DNA of 63,687 nt, the filler included, from Hausera hauseri (taxonomy: Eukaryota), in NCBI GenBank assembly GCA_046269625.1. It is 12 parts of 12 records of this genome, joined end to end, with 100 filler letters (N's around TTAATTAATTAA, not from the genome) between each part and the next. Parts side by side here need not be neighbours in the genome. Positions count along the whole stretch, not along the records: positions 57,794 to 63,687 come from JBJURY010172306.1; 11 more parts are not named here. The stretch is one strand, 5' to 3'. A program made the position numbers and the translations under genes. Below, in pieces: positions 57,641 to 63,687 of the stretch. Numbering within the stretch: the stretch's first letter is position 1; each line of letters opens with the position of its first letter. The notes under the pieces were generated by a model. The model was given only the letters and a program-made list of their open reading frames with translations, was not told where the DNA came from and ran no database searches.

Positions 57641-59139
57641 GTTTTAAAATTACTTAACGTTCCTTTGCATCATATATTTGGATGGTAGACAAGNNNNNNN
57701 NNNNNNNNNNNNNNNNNNNNNNNNNNNNNNNNNNNNNTTAATTAATTAANNNNNNNNNNNNNNNNNNNNNNNNNNNNNNNNNNNNNNNNNNNNACCAAAG
57801 CATTTTCGTAAATTGTTCCAATAAGTTTTATGAACAACATTCCGTTGACCTTTTAATGAAATCATTCAGTTTATGGATTTCAAAATTTTTTAACAAATTA
57901 AAGATTGAAAGTAAAAGGAACATTACGTTTATATTTTCCAAGGAATTTATTTCATGGCTTGAAAATATCAATTTTAAATCTCTCAAACGGCCGAATGGAA
58001 TAGTATTCGAAGAATTTTTCCGAGCTTTTTCTCATTTTCCTATAGTTAACTTCAATGGTGATCGATTTAAAGTATTTTGTTGGAAAATGCCGTGTCTTTG
58101 TACGACACTTTGGCTGATGATGATGATAAAAAACATTTGGTCAAGTCTCTGCTTTTCGAATTTAGACAAAAACGCAATTTTAACATTCGATTTGACGAAA
58201 AATTGCTTTTTAAACCGCTGTTTGATTTGCTACAAACTAAAAAGGACTGCTTGCAAATTTTGGGATTACAACTGATGCTTTGTTGGATCACAGTTTCGAA
58301 TATTGACTACATTAATCCACCCCTTATTGAATTGCTAAGGCAAATTAATGAAAAGGCATTAGGGAACATCGACGTCAATGGTTATCACATTAAAAAAATT
58401 AACCATGAATTATTGTCCAATGTTACAAACGTGTTTTTGTGTTTCATGAAAATGGAAGTTTCAACAAAACTTTCAACAGTTAATTGTCGATAATTTTGGT
58501 TACTTCTTGAAGGCATATCGGAAATGTGGGTTTGCAAAAGTTACTGTCGATCTTACGCTGAAAGTTATAATTCGGATGTTGAAGGCACTGACTAATAGTA
58601 TAAATCTAATACAATACAATTACAGTGCTCGTAATATATTTTTCTTTTCATTTTATCTTGAAATTGAACATTCCACAGATATGGATGCAAATATGTTATG
58701 TATATTACCAATATACGAGCGTCAGACTTACGATATATTCAAACGTCAGAGTTATCCGGATTTAAATTGGAAGAGAATATTTTATAATTTTCTGTCGATA
58801 ACAGATTTTCTCTTTGGATGCACAGTTTCACCGGGAACGTTTTAACAAAGAAATACTTGCAACGTATTTTTGAGAAAACGAATAACGACTTTATGTCGTA
58901 TGATTGTCCAGCAACCATTTTAGAAAATTCTTGTTTTGTTATAAAACACATTCATTTACATTCATAATTGCTGTGATAGATCTGGCTGCGTTGATGATCA
59001 AATGGACAAACTTAGGAATTTCATCAAATCTAACGAAAAATGTCAAGAAATTGTTGAGGAATTAAAACTAAATGAAACAAATAGTTTACAAAGTATTTTG
59101 CAGACAGGTACTTTCAGTAAAAAGCACTCCTACGACGAT

Positions 59140-59382
59140 TGGTGTTTGAATTTCAATCAGTTACCCGAAAAATTGCGTTTTTATCAGGTCCACATTTTTG
59201 TTGCATCTTTCGCTGGATTTCTGGCACAGGAAGTTGTCGACAATTCTCAAATACGATCCGATCGAATTCTATCGTTCGTTCTATGTAATTCATATTCGGG
59301 TACGTCCATTTTCCAATTGCAATTTAAATTGATATTATTTTGGATGATGCCTCAATATATTTTGCGTTTGATTATTTTATAA
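59140..59382 (+). pseudogene. SPG21: Maspardin fragment
   Basis: VHIFVASFAGFLAQ..RILSFVLCNSYSGTSIF..FWMMPQYIL compared with VHLFGASLGGFLAQ..SLILCNSFSDTSIF..FWLMPAFML. Confidence 0.85.
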
Positions 59383-59543
59383 GCATTTTCCATTTTGTCT
59401 AAGCATATTGATGGTACACTTTCCGGTCAAGAAGGGGAATTCAAACACATCCATAAATCATTCTCCTTTATTTACAATCGGAATTCTGCTGCACATTCCT
59501 GTTACCTTGCCGCTAAAATTTGATTGCTATCAAAAAATTGGAT

Positions 59544-59830
59544 GTAGCTGATGATTCGTTTAACATGCCAAGTATACACACTCCACAAAGTCCCCGGTCG
59601 CGCGATGTTTCAGGTGGCGTTGCTAGTGCCGACAGACGGAGATTCAAAATGCCGTATTCGATAACATCCGCAAACAAATTAATTGGGTCAACCGCGAGAA
59701 TAATTAAAGGACCTTCAAGGGGGAATTAGGTTACCCCGGAATTTGAGACCCGCCGCGGCGAGGCTGAGGTCCCGGCCGCCCACCCTGTGTCGGTCGGTCA
59801 AACGGCGCCTTTCGCGTCAGCCCCGCAACA
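59544..59830 (+). repeat. Conserved LTR-tail segment of element B, ending CAACA
   Basis: Homologous to 20446-20730. Confidence 0.7.
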
Positions 59831-62800
59831 CGCCCCCTGGCATACAACCTATCCCCTATTCTTCTTTTTCTCAATAATGAACACATACACACGTACACTT
59901 CATTGCATTTACATATTGTTACCCTTCGTACCTTCATTTCTTTCTTACTCCACTCTTCCGCTTTTATCTTACTCACAGCGGTTCCATAGTACCCCTCACC
60001 GGAACCCTAAAATCTTTCTGAACCCATACTTGTCTCCACATACATTTCCATACCCGTGGTGGCAAGAACTCATCGCCAAACCATAGACACCACGGATAAA
60101 ACCACCACGAAACCAAAATTTGTCATATTGCTTCAAAAACCACTCCTATACCTGCTAGCAACCTCTCACCTATGACCTCTTCCGCTCCTTTTCCTCACTG
60201 CACCGAATTCTTTATTGACAGCCAAGGCTCCTGCAAAACTTGGTTGAAATTCCATCAGCTATAGCTACAAGCAAATATTACTGATTCATTAACCAAGGCA
60301 CACAATCTTTTCTTCTTATCCCCAAATAATATCAAAATGCGAATTCACAACATCATTGAAATCTTTGAACTTCGTGACCCATATTCTCACCTTTCCAGCG
60401 CCATTCTTAAGATCACAGAACCCTCCATGGACACGATCATACAACGTTTCTTCCACGATAATGCTATAGGCACGCAACGACTGTCAGAATTCTTACGCAC
60501 CTCTCTGGCACATCTACATACTCTCGGCGTCACTAAAGAACATAAACCAGATCTACTGCGCCACTATTTTTGCAATCTTTAACCTATCCAAATCCGGGCT
60601 TTACTTACCGTGGTGGAGGACTCTACGACTCTTGAGAAATTGGTCGAATTAGCCGATAGGACATACGTCGTTCTCCACTTAAATTCCCCACCAGTTGTTT
60701 TGGCAGCAGTTTGCCACTAAAGTTATTCAAACCAATAACACATCAATAGAACAACAGCTTAATCAGCTACGTGCCGAAAATATTGCAGTACACGCTAAAA
60801 TCAACAATTTTAGTAATAAATTAAACGAACTTTCTCTGTTCTGCCGGGAGGAAATTGTCGCTGACCGCATTCGTTCTGCGTCTAGAAACCGCTCAGCATC
60901 GCCTGCGCGTTCGTCCATCGGCTATTACCACAGCAGATTTAACACTAGCACTCAAAAGTGCTGCATAGGGTGCAAATTTTATAACAAAAATTTTTCCTCG
61001 GACACCGTTGTTTGCATCTACCATGCAAGGTTTAAAAATCAAGCTCGTAAATGTATTCCAGGCTGTACTTTCAAATCAAACAAGAACGACGGACGTACTG
61101 CCTTTTCTTCTAATAGTCGTCCTAATTCACACATTCAAAAAAACTAAGTTCGCCGCCAGAAGTCACGGCAAACTCTGGCAAAGACATTACTTCACTTTCT
61201 GAACGCCGACACATCTTTTTTGCTGTCTTTACCCTAAAGGCTGCAATCACTGCTCCTACAACGTAATCTGTTGACTTCCTCATCAGTACAGGTGCAGCGA
61301 TTTCTTTATTACCACAAACCTTTCCTGTACAAAATTCTCCATTCAAAATTAAGCCCTTATACACTGCTTCAGGCCAACCGCTGCACATTTTTGGCATGGC
61401 TAAATTATCTTTCACTTTAACAAATTTTTCTTTACCTTTCCATTGGATGTTCACAGTCGCTAACGTCCAGACGGCAATTTTAGGATCCGACTTTCTCTCA
61501 CACTATAATTTACTGGTTGACTGCAGTCAGCGATATTTGAGGGACGGCACCACTGGCGACATTTCTGAGCATGTCAATAGCGTTTCAACTAACGCGCAGT
61601 CGACCGGAACGCGAAAATCAATCTTAAAAGAACCAACGAATAATTCGAATTTTTATAACAATAACTCAATTTGTAAATTTTTAAATAATAATACTCATAT
61701 ACGATCGAGGTTCGATGTCGATAAGTGTAGTACTGCCACCCACGTTAAATCATTCTGCGAAAATACTCATCTAACACCATTTTCAATTCGACCATTTTAC
61801 ACCAAATACCACTTGACTGCACATCACCTAGCAACAAACAAATTGCATCCGCTACTACTCAAGCCATTTCACCACTTCCACTAAATCTCTCACAGTTACC
61901 TACAACTTCACAGCAATTCGTCAATACATCATATCCACGCGTACTTAAAAATGATCGTACGTTTACTCCTGCCAACAGTACTTTACACCATATAGTTACA
62001 CAGCATCAACGACCTATACGCCAAAAGGTACGGCCCCTGTCACCCCGTTGTAGACAGGCCGTAGAAGCCGAATTTCTTGAACTAGAACGTTTCGGCATAG
62101 TACGCTGTTCCAAATCTCCTTTGTCATCACCTTTACACGCTGTACAAAAAAGGACAGTACTTTTAGACCGTGCGGTGACTACCGACAGCTGAACAACTTG
62201 ACTATCATAAATGCGTACCCTTTATCACTCATCAAGGATATTTTGCATCGTTTTAATTCAACCACCATCTATTCGGCAATTGATTTAACTAAAACATATC
62301 ATCAAGTACCGGTGGCACCGGAAGACATAAAAAAAACTGCTGTCACTACTCCTTTCGGCCTCTATGAATGCCTGTTTATGCCATTCGGTTTGCAGAGTGC
62401 CGCACAAACTTTTCAGCGACACATTGATTGAATTCTTTCAGACTTCCCGTTTGCACACCCTTATATCGATGATATTCTAGTCGTTTCATCTACGGCCAAA
62501 CAACACGAGGAACACCTTCGCGCAATATCTCAACATCTTGACCACCATAATCTCCAATTCAATTTTGACAAATGCCATTTCTTCAAAAAGCGCATTAACT
62601 ATTTAGGCCACATTATTTTACCAGACGGTCATTCTCCCCAACCTGACCGAGTCAAAGCTATTAAAAATATCCAGTTGCCACACACAACCACTGAAATGCG
62701 CAGCTTCCTTGGTACACTACACTTTGTACATAAATATGTACCATATTGCTTCAACTTTGCAGCACCGTTCGCACACCTAAGCGGCGGCAAAAACATCAGT

Positions 62801-63687
62801 TAATCCAGTGGACACCTGAATTGGTTGACAAATTTGACAAGCTACGCGAAGGAATCAAAACCGTCGATATTCTAGCTTTTCCCAAGCCTGATGCAGAACT
62901 CATCCTTACTACAGACGAGTCAAACACTGCTGTACGCGCTGTACACCACCAGATCTACAAAGGCGAAATTCAACCGCTAGAATTTTTCTCTCGCAAGCTA
63001 ACAGCCCTTGAAACCAGATATTCAACGTTCGATCGAGAACTATTGGCCATCGTTCTTGCTTTAAAGCATTTCTCCCACCTACTTGTCGCTCGTCATCTTA
63101 CTATACAAACCGATCACAAGCCCTTACTTAACATCATGGCTATGAAACACCCTTCCACACGGCAAGAACGACAGATATCATACTTATCGACATTTAAATT
63201 CGATATTAAACACATTAACGGAGTTAACAATTTGGTTGCTGATATTTTGTCTAGGTCGGTTAGTTCAATTAATTTTTCTCAGATCTTTACGCAAGACCAA
63301 TTTCAACAGAACCAGCTACCTCAAGACATGCTTAATTCTTTTAAGTCTTGCACAATCGTTGACGGCGTGGCTTTAGACACTTCCAAACCAGGCCATTCGG
63401 TAATAAATCTAGCACCATCGTTGCAAAGGCAAGCTTTTCACAAAGTGCATTCACTACACCATCCTGGTGCTAAAGTTACTTTTCGTCTACTCTATCAACA
63501 AGCAATATGGCTCTCAATGCGTTTTGATGTGCAGGCATGGGTTAAGGAGTGTGTGGCTTGCCAAAAATACAAAACAGCTAAGCATTTAAAGTCACTACTG
63601 TTTCACTTTTCCTGCACATCGCGTTTCGAGTCCGTGCATATTGACATCGTTGGCCCTCTTCCTCCAGACAACGGTCATCAATTCATC
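59831..63687 (+). mobile_element. CsRn1-clade Gypsy element B (Ubl-gag, protease, RT, RNase H, start of integrase), degenerate
   Basis: HTRGG at ~60049-60063; double knuckle; slippery site at 61138; PYIDD, RELLA, VHIDIVGP. Confidence 0.93.
61138..61179 (+). promoter_or_regulatory. -1 ribosomal frameshift signal (AAAAAAC plus H-type pseudoknot); equivalents at 19100-19141 (-) and 40436-40477 (-)
   Basis: Slippery heptamer directly before the gag TAA; stems GCCG/CGGC and CCAGA/TCTGG. Confidence 0.8.

Follow-up and report, generated by a model that had tools for sequence, protein, structure and literature searches.

A CsRn1-type gypsy retrotransposon of Hausera hauseri without a tRNA-type primer-binding site, and the possibility that it primes itself

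How would a retrotransposon begin minus-strand DNA when the place just past its long terminal repeat (LTR), where a tRNA normally anneals, holds no tRNA-type site? The question is raised by a degenerate Ty3/gypsy element in a 63,687-nucleotide stretch of Hausera hauseri DNA (assembly GCA_046269625.1; hereafter the window), which consists of 12 parts of 12 records joined end to end. An earlier note on this DNA held that the primer-binding site (PBS) of the element had been replaced by the exact complement of the family's polypurine tract (PPT), as read from a near-identical element elsewhere in the window, and suggested either priming by a PPT-derived RNA or circularization of the genomic RNA. 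To our knowledge, the only primers of reverse transcription are tRNA 3′ ends, half-tRNAs, and the element's own RNA in self-priming, and primer choice is a defining trait of retroelement lineages. Our analysis covered positions 57794–63687 only (record JBJURY010172306.1; hereafter the piece), which contain a single copy of the element, on the + strand. The element is a CsRn1-type gypsy retrotransposon without the tRNA-Trp site of its clade, and both the letters at the junction and the missing site are real. We tentatively favor, as the likeliest of several readings and with well under even confidence, that the family begins minus-strand DNA by Tf1-type self-priming, without a tRNA; either self-priming or a misplaced LTR border explains the bases at the junction better than a PPT complement does.

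The letters at the junction are as previously reported, with CAACA at 59826–59830, CG at 59831–59832, and the 10-mer CCCCCTGGCA at 59833–59842 (+ strand), the latter either closing U5 as its final 10 bases or forming, with the CG, the primer-binding slot. A normal PBS is absent, in that no TGG-type site follows the LTR, whether it ends at 59830 or at 59842. From 59600 to the gag ATG, TGG occurs only at 59615, 59684, 59838, 60057, 60060, and 60241, and within 200 bases past either LTR end there was none but that inside the 10-mer (59838), which lies 8 bases after CAACA, outside the 0–5 bases from the LTR end that characterize tRNA-primed elements. The tRNA-Trp PBS pattern matched only with at least two mismatches and nowhere after the LTR (5 matches, versus 6.5 expected by chance), and neither ARAGORN nor Rfam identified a tRNA gene or tRNA-like RNA in the piece, the Rfam scan of which returned nothing relevant. 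Likewise, a scan of the piece for bacterial-type promoters and terminators, a type of scan inapplicable to this DNA, returned nothing, and literature string searches for the 10-mer produced only unrelated matches. Two candidate sites were discarded: the tRNA-Trp-like AGGTTACCCCGG at 59728, which is at chance level, and TGGCATACAACC, which would need an A/U-rich acceptor stem starting with A, something that does not appear credible for a nuclear tRNA. Decay alone also seems unlikely as the cause of the missing PBS, since neither the tRNA-Trp site nor a TGG start would be reachable by one or two base changes.

The lineage of the element can be read from its gag. A full HMMER scan of 1.84 billion representatives returned 42 gag relatives (best E 4.6e-19), 41 of which had two CX2HX9CX3C (CHCC) zinc-knuckle motifs, while CCHC was found in none of the 42. 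In the element, the two motifs are at 60920–60973 and 61013–61066 (+ strand) and correspond to invariant columns among the relatives; the second is intact, and the first has Gly for its first Cys. The CHCC gag is the signature of the CsRn1 clade, known from trematodes and insects, the members of which have a tRNA-Trp PBS, TGGTGA(G/C)CCCG(T/A), a 4-bp target-site duplication, and LTR ends TGT...ACA (PMC2582038), with ...AAA and ...ATA endings allowed beside ...ACA. Because its gag carries the CHCC signature, the element is placed in the CsRn1 clade. The nearest protein clusters in the ESM Atlas came from arthropod taxa, which points to an arthropod host. With the PBS slot empty under either LTR end in a clade that has a tRNA-Trp site, priming without a tRNA 3′ end is a fair inference, and to this extent the earlier proposal stands; its other half, the PPT as source of the primer, finds nothing in the piece to support it.

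If not a tRNA, what could pair with the bases past U5? The exact complement of the 10-mer, TGCCAGGGGG, is absent from the piece, where TTCAAGGGGG at 59714, with 2 mismatches, and TTTCAGGTGG at 59608, with 3, come closest. The only partners found for the 10-mer and its neighbors lie inside or at the edge of the element's own LTR (59608–59619 and 59714–59723). Two pairs have the arrangement of a self-primer, that is, a PBS just past U5 that is complementary to RNA encoded by the LTR of the same element, the first with modest statistics and the second more weakly. In the first, the candidate self-primer arm GGGGGA[AT]TAGGTT, a G-run motif at 59719–59732 (+ strand), pairs with the candidate self-priming PBS AACCTATCCCCT at 59846–59857 (+ strand), 3 bases past TGGCA. 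The predicted helix comprises 12 bp (11 Watson-Crick and 1 G-U) with a 2-base bulge, and has an energy of −16.3 to −17.1 kcal/mol versus −10.4 to −11.3 for shuffled LTRs (sd 2.2–2.4; p 0.01–0.02). Moreover, it is found in both the minimum-energy and the centroid folds, with pair probabilities of 0.6–1.0 in four transcript contexts, and among 495 leader 12-mers the one at 59846–59857 stands 5th for LTR pairing, or second if only independent sites are counted. The second pair joins the 12-mer at 59831–59842 (TTTCAGGTGGCG) to its best LTR partner, 59608–59619 (+ strand), by 10 of 12 pairs, 9 of them Watson-Crick. This pairing was matched by 9% of LTR shuffles (p ~0.09), its duplex energy is not significant, and the 12-mer ranks 11th of the 495; its partner overlaps an initiator-like TCAGGT at 59610–59615.

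Under Tf1-type self-priming, a stretch near the 5′ end of the transcript, encoded by the LTR, would fold back onto the complementary site just past U5, RNase H would cleave the RNA duplex, and the freed 3′ end would prime minus-strand synthesis. The better-supported pair would then have the LTR end at TGGCA (59842), with CCCCCTGGCA as the last 10 bases of U5, the end recognized by integrase, whereas in the weaker pair the self-priming PBS would consist of the CG and the 10-mer. For both pairs, the LTR itself contains the complementary motif, which would thus also be present in every 3′ LTR, near where a PPT is sought, and could pass for one. The anatomy of the element, its clade signature, the lack of a tRNA-type site, and the predicted helices are directly supported. 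The start of the transcript, cleavage by RNase H, the act of priming, and any connection with the other element described in the earlier note are inferred. Tf1 and Tj1 are established self-primers, and sequence-based inference has extended the mechanism to retrotransposons of hosts ranging from fungi to vertebrates and to ~12% of plant elements.

Several results weigh against self-priming. Corrected for the slots tried, the p-values become ~0.03–0.05 for 59719–59732 with 59846–59857 and ~0.1 for 59608–59619 with 59831–59842, which is only modest significance, and the predicted folding of the complete LTR-leader region is no stronger than that of shuffles (z +1.77). In addition, CGCAACA at 59824–59830 fits the published consensus for LTR 3′ ends, YNYAACA, at 7 of 7 positions and is the sole match in 59720–59950; the fit favors an LTR end at 59830 and so counts against the better-supported of the two pairs. 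The transcript start is a guess, made from the initiator-like TCAGGT and from A+T-rich motifs. The TATA-like motifs are awkwardly spaced for it (~−39 for a start at 59612, ~−20 for one at 59719), and U3 would be only ~46 bases long if transcription began at 59612. Moreover, we know of no self-priming in the CsRn1 clade, and the evidence comes from one degenerate copy.

The LTR and leader have further features. An imperfect, G+C-rich palindrome with 23-base arms that are 74% complementary lies inside the LTR at 59736–59775, and folds into the central hairpins of the domain that the helix of 59719–59732 with 59846–59857 closes. The strongest predicted LTR pairing of any leader 12-mer belongs to TACCCGTGGTGGCA at 60051–60066, which pairs with 59749–59764 at −17.5 kcal/mol and could be a second long-range contact or a chance pairing of G+C-rich DNA. 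An inverted duplication of the LTR purine tract in the leader was considered and rejected, since 71% of shuffles score equally. Finally, ATTAAA was read directly at 59703–59708 (+ strand) and may serve as a polyadenylation signal or belong to an A+T-rich core promoter, conserved internal LTR motifs being of the AATAAA and TATA types.

Where the LTR begins and ends bears on all of these readings. Its borders are unproven, the piece having one LTR and no second repeat to compare. Our preferred limits are TGCCA...TGGCA at 59566–59842 (277 bp, + strand), based on depth, composition, and an inverted repeat; the alternative, assumed in the earlier note, is TGTTTCA...CGCAACA at 59606–59830 (225 bp, + strand), which fits the terminal consensus. 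We measured depth as summed contig depth in the one public run that contains the sequence, stored as contigs and not identifiable as an RNA run, in bins of 197 bases, so that the border of the repeat is coarse. It rose from ~100 to ~980 at the bin border 59566/59567 and stayed at ~980–1400 across 59567–59960, the DNA upstream of ~59567 being ~10x less repeated than the element. At the same border G+C rises from ~0.33 to 0.55 (27–38% in the flank), and it is here (~59566) that the element's C-rich strand bias sets in. Thus, the left end of the longer LTR coincides with both the depth step and the onset of C-rich composition. Furthermore, 59591–59605 is 80–87% G+C, which is odd for a flank of ~33% G+C, and is included by the longer limits and excluded by the shorter ones. 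The flank residues encoded by 59383–59520 (+ strand) match Pfam KOW4_SPT5, the fourth KOW domain of Spt5, at E 1.5e-9, above the Pfam cut-off. With this low-repeat, KOW4_SPT5-coding flank in place, the LTR cannot extend upstream of ~59550.

The shorter limits draw on published consensus sequences (3′ end YNYAACA, start TGTTRNR, initiator TCAKTY). Besides the perfect fit of CGCAACA, TGTTTCA at 59606–59612 fits the start consensus at 6 of 7 positions, and no other such motif occurs in the block. The earlier note's LTR end at 59830 is therefore plausible but is not proven by this fit, TGGCA at 59838–59842 being an equally canonical CA end. The same note had named an outcome that would undo its reading, namely 3′ LTRs ending at TTTCA (~59612) with TGGCGTTG as the PBS behind them. 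This was not borne out: we rejected it on the depth step, the KOW4_SPT5-coding flank up to 59520, and the nature of TGTTTCA as a start-type motif.

The uncertainty of the borders leads to the most serious competitor of self-priming, in which the junction is an ordinary LTR terminus. The LTR would extend ~12 bases further out on both sides (~59608–59842, or 59566–59842), the 10-mer and its complement would be the terminal inverted repeat bound by integrase, and the copy would simply be dead, with its primer site unrecognizable. We consider this quite possible, if on balance doubtful, and include under the same estimate a variant in which the complement read in the earlier note was the corresponding LTR-leader junction, seen in a near-identical copy that lies on the opposite strand; given the inverted-repeat ends of an LTR, such a junction would mimic a PPT followed by an LTR start (G-run, CG, TGTTG). 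In its favor, the CA at the end of the 10-mer and the TG at the start of its complement are canonical LTR termini, and TGCCA at 59566–59570, where depth and composition change, pairs with TGGCA at 59838–59842 as a perfect 5-base terminal inverted repeat. Additionally, a diverged complement is present near the left LTR edge (59608–59619, 9 of 12 identical), where the true PPT could not be, and numerous stops and frame changes mark the copy as degenerate. However, the terminal inverted repeats of neither border set are significant in the single copy, and extended ones were rejected, as 46% of shuffles score equally. CGCAACA, 12 bases inside the 59842 end, has its full consensus fit in a clade with TGT...ACA LTRs, and there is still no tRNA-type site past 59842, such that an ordinary terminus explains the complementarity and not the priming.

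A host RNA might also serve as primer. In this reading, CGCCCCC(T)GG after CAACA would be a short PBS for the acceptor 3′ strand of a tRNA-Asn that has lost its CCA or has yet to receive it, and the match to the PPT would be incidental; we regard it as improbable. The 10 bases at 59831–59840 are complementary at 9 positions, 7 of them contiguous, to ...CCCGGGGGCG, the end before the CCA of a Drosophila 18-mer, GTCCACCCGGGGGCGCCA, which reportedly differs from the 3′ end of tRNA:N5 (Asn) by 1–2 mismatches at most. A similar end, ...CCCACCCAGGGACG, is found in 3′ fragments of human tRNA-Asn. Half-tRNA primers are known, and copia and Ty5, with their cleaved tRNA primers, would offer an analogy. 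The reading presupposes that the host has tRNA-Asn genes with ...CCAGGGGGCG or ...CCCGGGGGCG at positions 64–73. Against it, the complementarity ends after 10 bases, and the comparison is with tRNA-Asn of Drosophila and human rather than with the host's own tRNAs. The place of a TGG for the CCA is taken by the ACA of the LTR end, and a mature tRNA would thus have an unpaired 3′ end and could not prime. The chance of such a match, roughly estimated over ~360 combinations of tRNA end and offset, is 0.01–0.05.

There remain the two inferences of the earlier note. We judge it distinctly unlikely that the bases past U5 are truly the complement of the family's PPT/U3 border, whether they circularize the RNA or anneal a PPT-derived RNA primer whose copying into the plus strand would have overwritten the PBS, and PPT priming and RNA cyclization taken together remain unlikely. 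For 5′–3′ cyclization, which on its own appears very unlikely, the LTR would span 59606–59830 and, at the 3′ end of the RNA, the partner of the 12-mer past U5 would be the start of U3 or the border between PPT and U3. The best partner of 59831–59842, at 59608–59619, would indeed be U3 bases 3–14 if the LTR starts at 59606. End-to-end pairing also has precedent in Ty1 and Ty3, in which it is needed for efficient initiation, by CYC5:CYC3 in Ty1 and by a tRNA-bridged bipartite PBS in Ty3. However, the pairing in this copy is 10 of 12 at p ~0.09 with no significant energy, an LTR start at 59606 is doubtful given the G+C-rich patch just upstream, and cyclization supplies no primer, leaving the missing PBS unexplained.

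To the PPT primer itself we assign the least probability of all. Here, an RNA oligonucleotide derived from the PPT and ending in ...GGGGG would anneal to the C-run past U5 and prime the minus strand; in a variant, a single mispriming event would have overwritten the PBS with the PPT complement, by way of the plus-strand copy of the 3′ part of the primer, and left a footprint. The geometry is right, as the primer 3′ end would face U5 across the usual 2-base spacer, CG, and no tRNA-type PBS is present. Moreover, in retroviruses the PBS is regenerated from the primer. However, PPT primers are made by RNase H from the RNA:DNA hybrid, after minus-strand DNA exists, and because they arise only then the first round cannot start in this way. 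In addition, the piece contains no PPT, making the complementarity putative, and the partners of the 10-mer in this copy lie inside the LTR. G-runs at PPT ends and C-runs are also common, so that 5–6 matching bases mean little.

Downstream of the junction, the frame map and Pfam matches outline the rest of the degenerate Ty3/gypsy element, all on the + strand. A leader of ~500 bases separates the LTR from gag, which was located by the frame map at 60337–61147 and has a stop near 60580 and a frame change near 60690–60717. An open frame between gag and the reverse transcriptase (61267–61881) is putatively the protease region, by position only, as no Pfam family matched it. The reverse transcriptase, at 62081–62800, was recovered as two pieces matching RVT_1 (E 1.8e-11 and 6.6e-13) with a stop at 62429–62431 between them, and is followed by an RNase H domain at 62887–63195 (RT_RNaseH, E 5.4e-26) and the zinc-binding domain of integrase at 63415–63576 (Integrase_H2C2, E 1.8e-13). 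The order RVT_1, RT_RNaseH, Integrase_H2C2 is that of Ty3/gypsy, with the protease assigned by position only. The integrase frame is still open where the piece ends (63687); thus, the piece includes the 5′ LTR, stops within integrase, and has neither a 3′ LTR nor a PPT, and a search within it for a long direct repeat found none, that is, no second LTR or copy. In the first CHCC motif, the codon at 60920–60922 encodes Gly at a position that is Cys in all but one of 14 aligned relatives. This substitution in the gag knuckle, together with the many stops and the frame changes, indicates that the copy is dead.

The flank has features of its own. Its + strand contains unusually long open frames of 131–159 codons (57796–58272, 58071–58490, 58450–58842, and 58945–59379), and apart from the 46-residue KOW4_SPT5 stretch the flank frames matched nothing. 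It is a low-copy repeat, with summed contig depth of 16–112 and paralogous contigs that are ~90% alike with indels. Its source may be a duplicated Spt5-like gene that has since decayed, or a piece of a gene borne by another mobile element.

We also searched for other copies and relatives of the element. Protein-guided scans of viral and JGI metagenome contigs found no copy, exact 20-mer scans of GTDB genomes and metagenomes gave no match, and neither a protein database search with the spurious frame across the LTR and leader, which would catch translated copies, nor a word-based gag search of protein collections returned a match. The best relative of the RNase H-integrase region in the protein collections is only 54% identical. 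The gag alignment is too variable for a scan of loci. A degenerate DNA pattern for CHCC found nothing in viral contigs; in GTDB it found six short contigs of one metagenome-assembled genome (MAG), representing distant CsRn1-type families, in which there was no recognizable LTR or PBS. These six (L001–L006: JAYSWT010000082, 461, 366, 231, 049, and 160; "MAG: bacterium isolate GFS_12994") encode CsRn1-type gag, and two of them also have a gypsy reverse transcriptase, 65–78% alike to the present element at the DNA level. The GFS_12994 contigs are eukaryotic DNA, probably of an invertebrate, that was mis-binned into a bacterial MAG. Among proteins with the CHCC gag domain, P0147 (1272 residues) and P0149 (1323 residues) have it at the extreme C-terminus, behind ~1180 uncharacterized residues, an architecture that is either unusual or a gene-call fusion.

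The readings differ in what they would mean. A CsRn1-type family that has lost its tRNA-Trp site would exhibit a primer switch within a clade, and self-priming, if true, would extend beyond the Tf1/sushi, Tcn1, and TAR groups. The PPT-complement reading, if true, would amount to a new mechanism of initiation or cyclization; we know of no LTR element for which minus-strand initiation from a PPT-derived RNA has been described. If instead the border reading is true, the finding is ordinary and serves as a warning that the inverted-repeat ends of an LTR, read on the wrong strand, mimic a PPT plus an LTR start.

Compared with known systems, the element is close to the CsRn1 clade (CsRn1, PwRn1, AgCR-1 to -14, and Kabuki), with which it has in common the order of reverse transcriptase, RNase H, and integrase and the CHCC gag that replaces CCHC, here present twice, and with which it may share TGT...ACA LTR termini. 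The hallmark tRNA-Trp PBS of that clade is, in contrast, absent, with no TGG-type site after either candidate LTR end. In the latter respect the element resembles the Tf1/sushi-type self-primers (Tf1, Tj1, and sushi-ichi, with predicted cases in the plant Tcn1 and TAR lineages), which also have no tRNA site. In Tf1, the site past U5 pairs with an upstream LTR stretch to form a self-primer/PBS duplex around the U5-IR stem-loop, and the arms identified here are likewise predicted to close a structured U5 domain. However, the gag signature is that of a different gypsy clade, and the piece stops before the integrase C-terminus, where a chromodomain would be judged. Moreover, in Tf1-type elements the primer is the first ~11 bases of the transcript, a place that the LTR arm here would occupy only if transcription starts at it, and the duplex of this copy has a 2-base bulge. 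The half-tRNA priming of copia, Ty5, and the plant Osser and Bianca lineages, in which a cut tRNA is the primer and the PBS does not start with TGG, is compatible with the 9 of 10 match to tRNA-Asn, but the known cases are Ty1/copia elements primed by a tRNA-Met or tRNA-Ile 5′ half that reaches to the anticodon loop; priming by an acceptor end that has lost its CCA is not among them. Finally, in Ty1 and Ty3 cyclization the sequence adjacent to the PBS pairs, directly or via the tRNA, with the 3′ end of the genomic RNA, which is the same idea of cyclization as that put forward earlier for this element; those elements still use a tRNA-iMet primer, whereas the present element has no visible tRNA site and its 3′ end is outside the piece.

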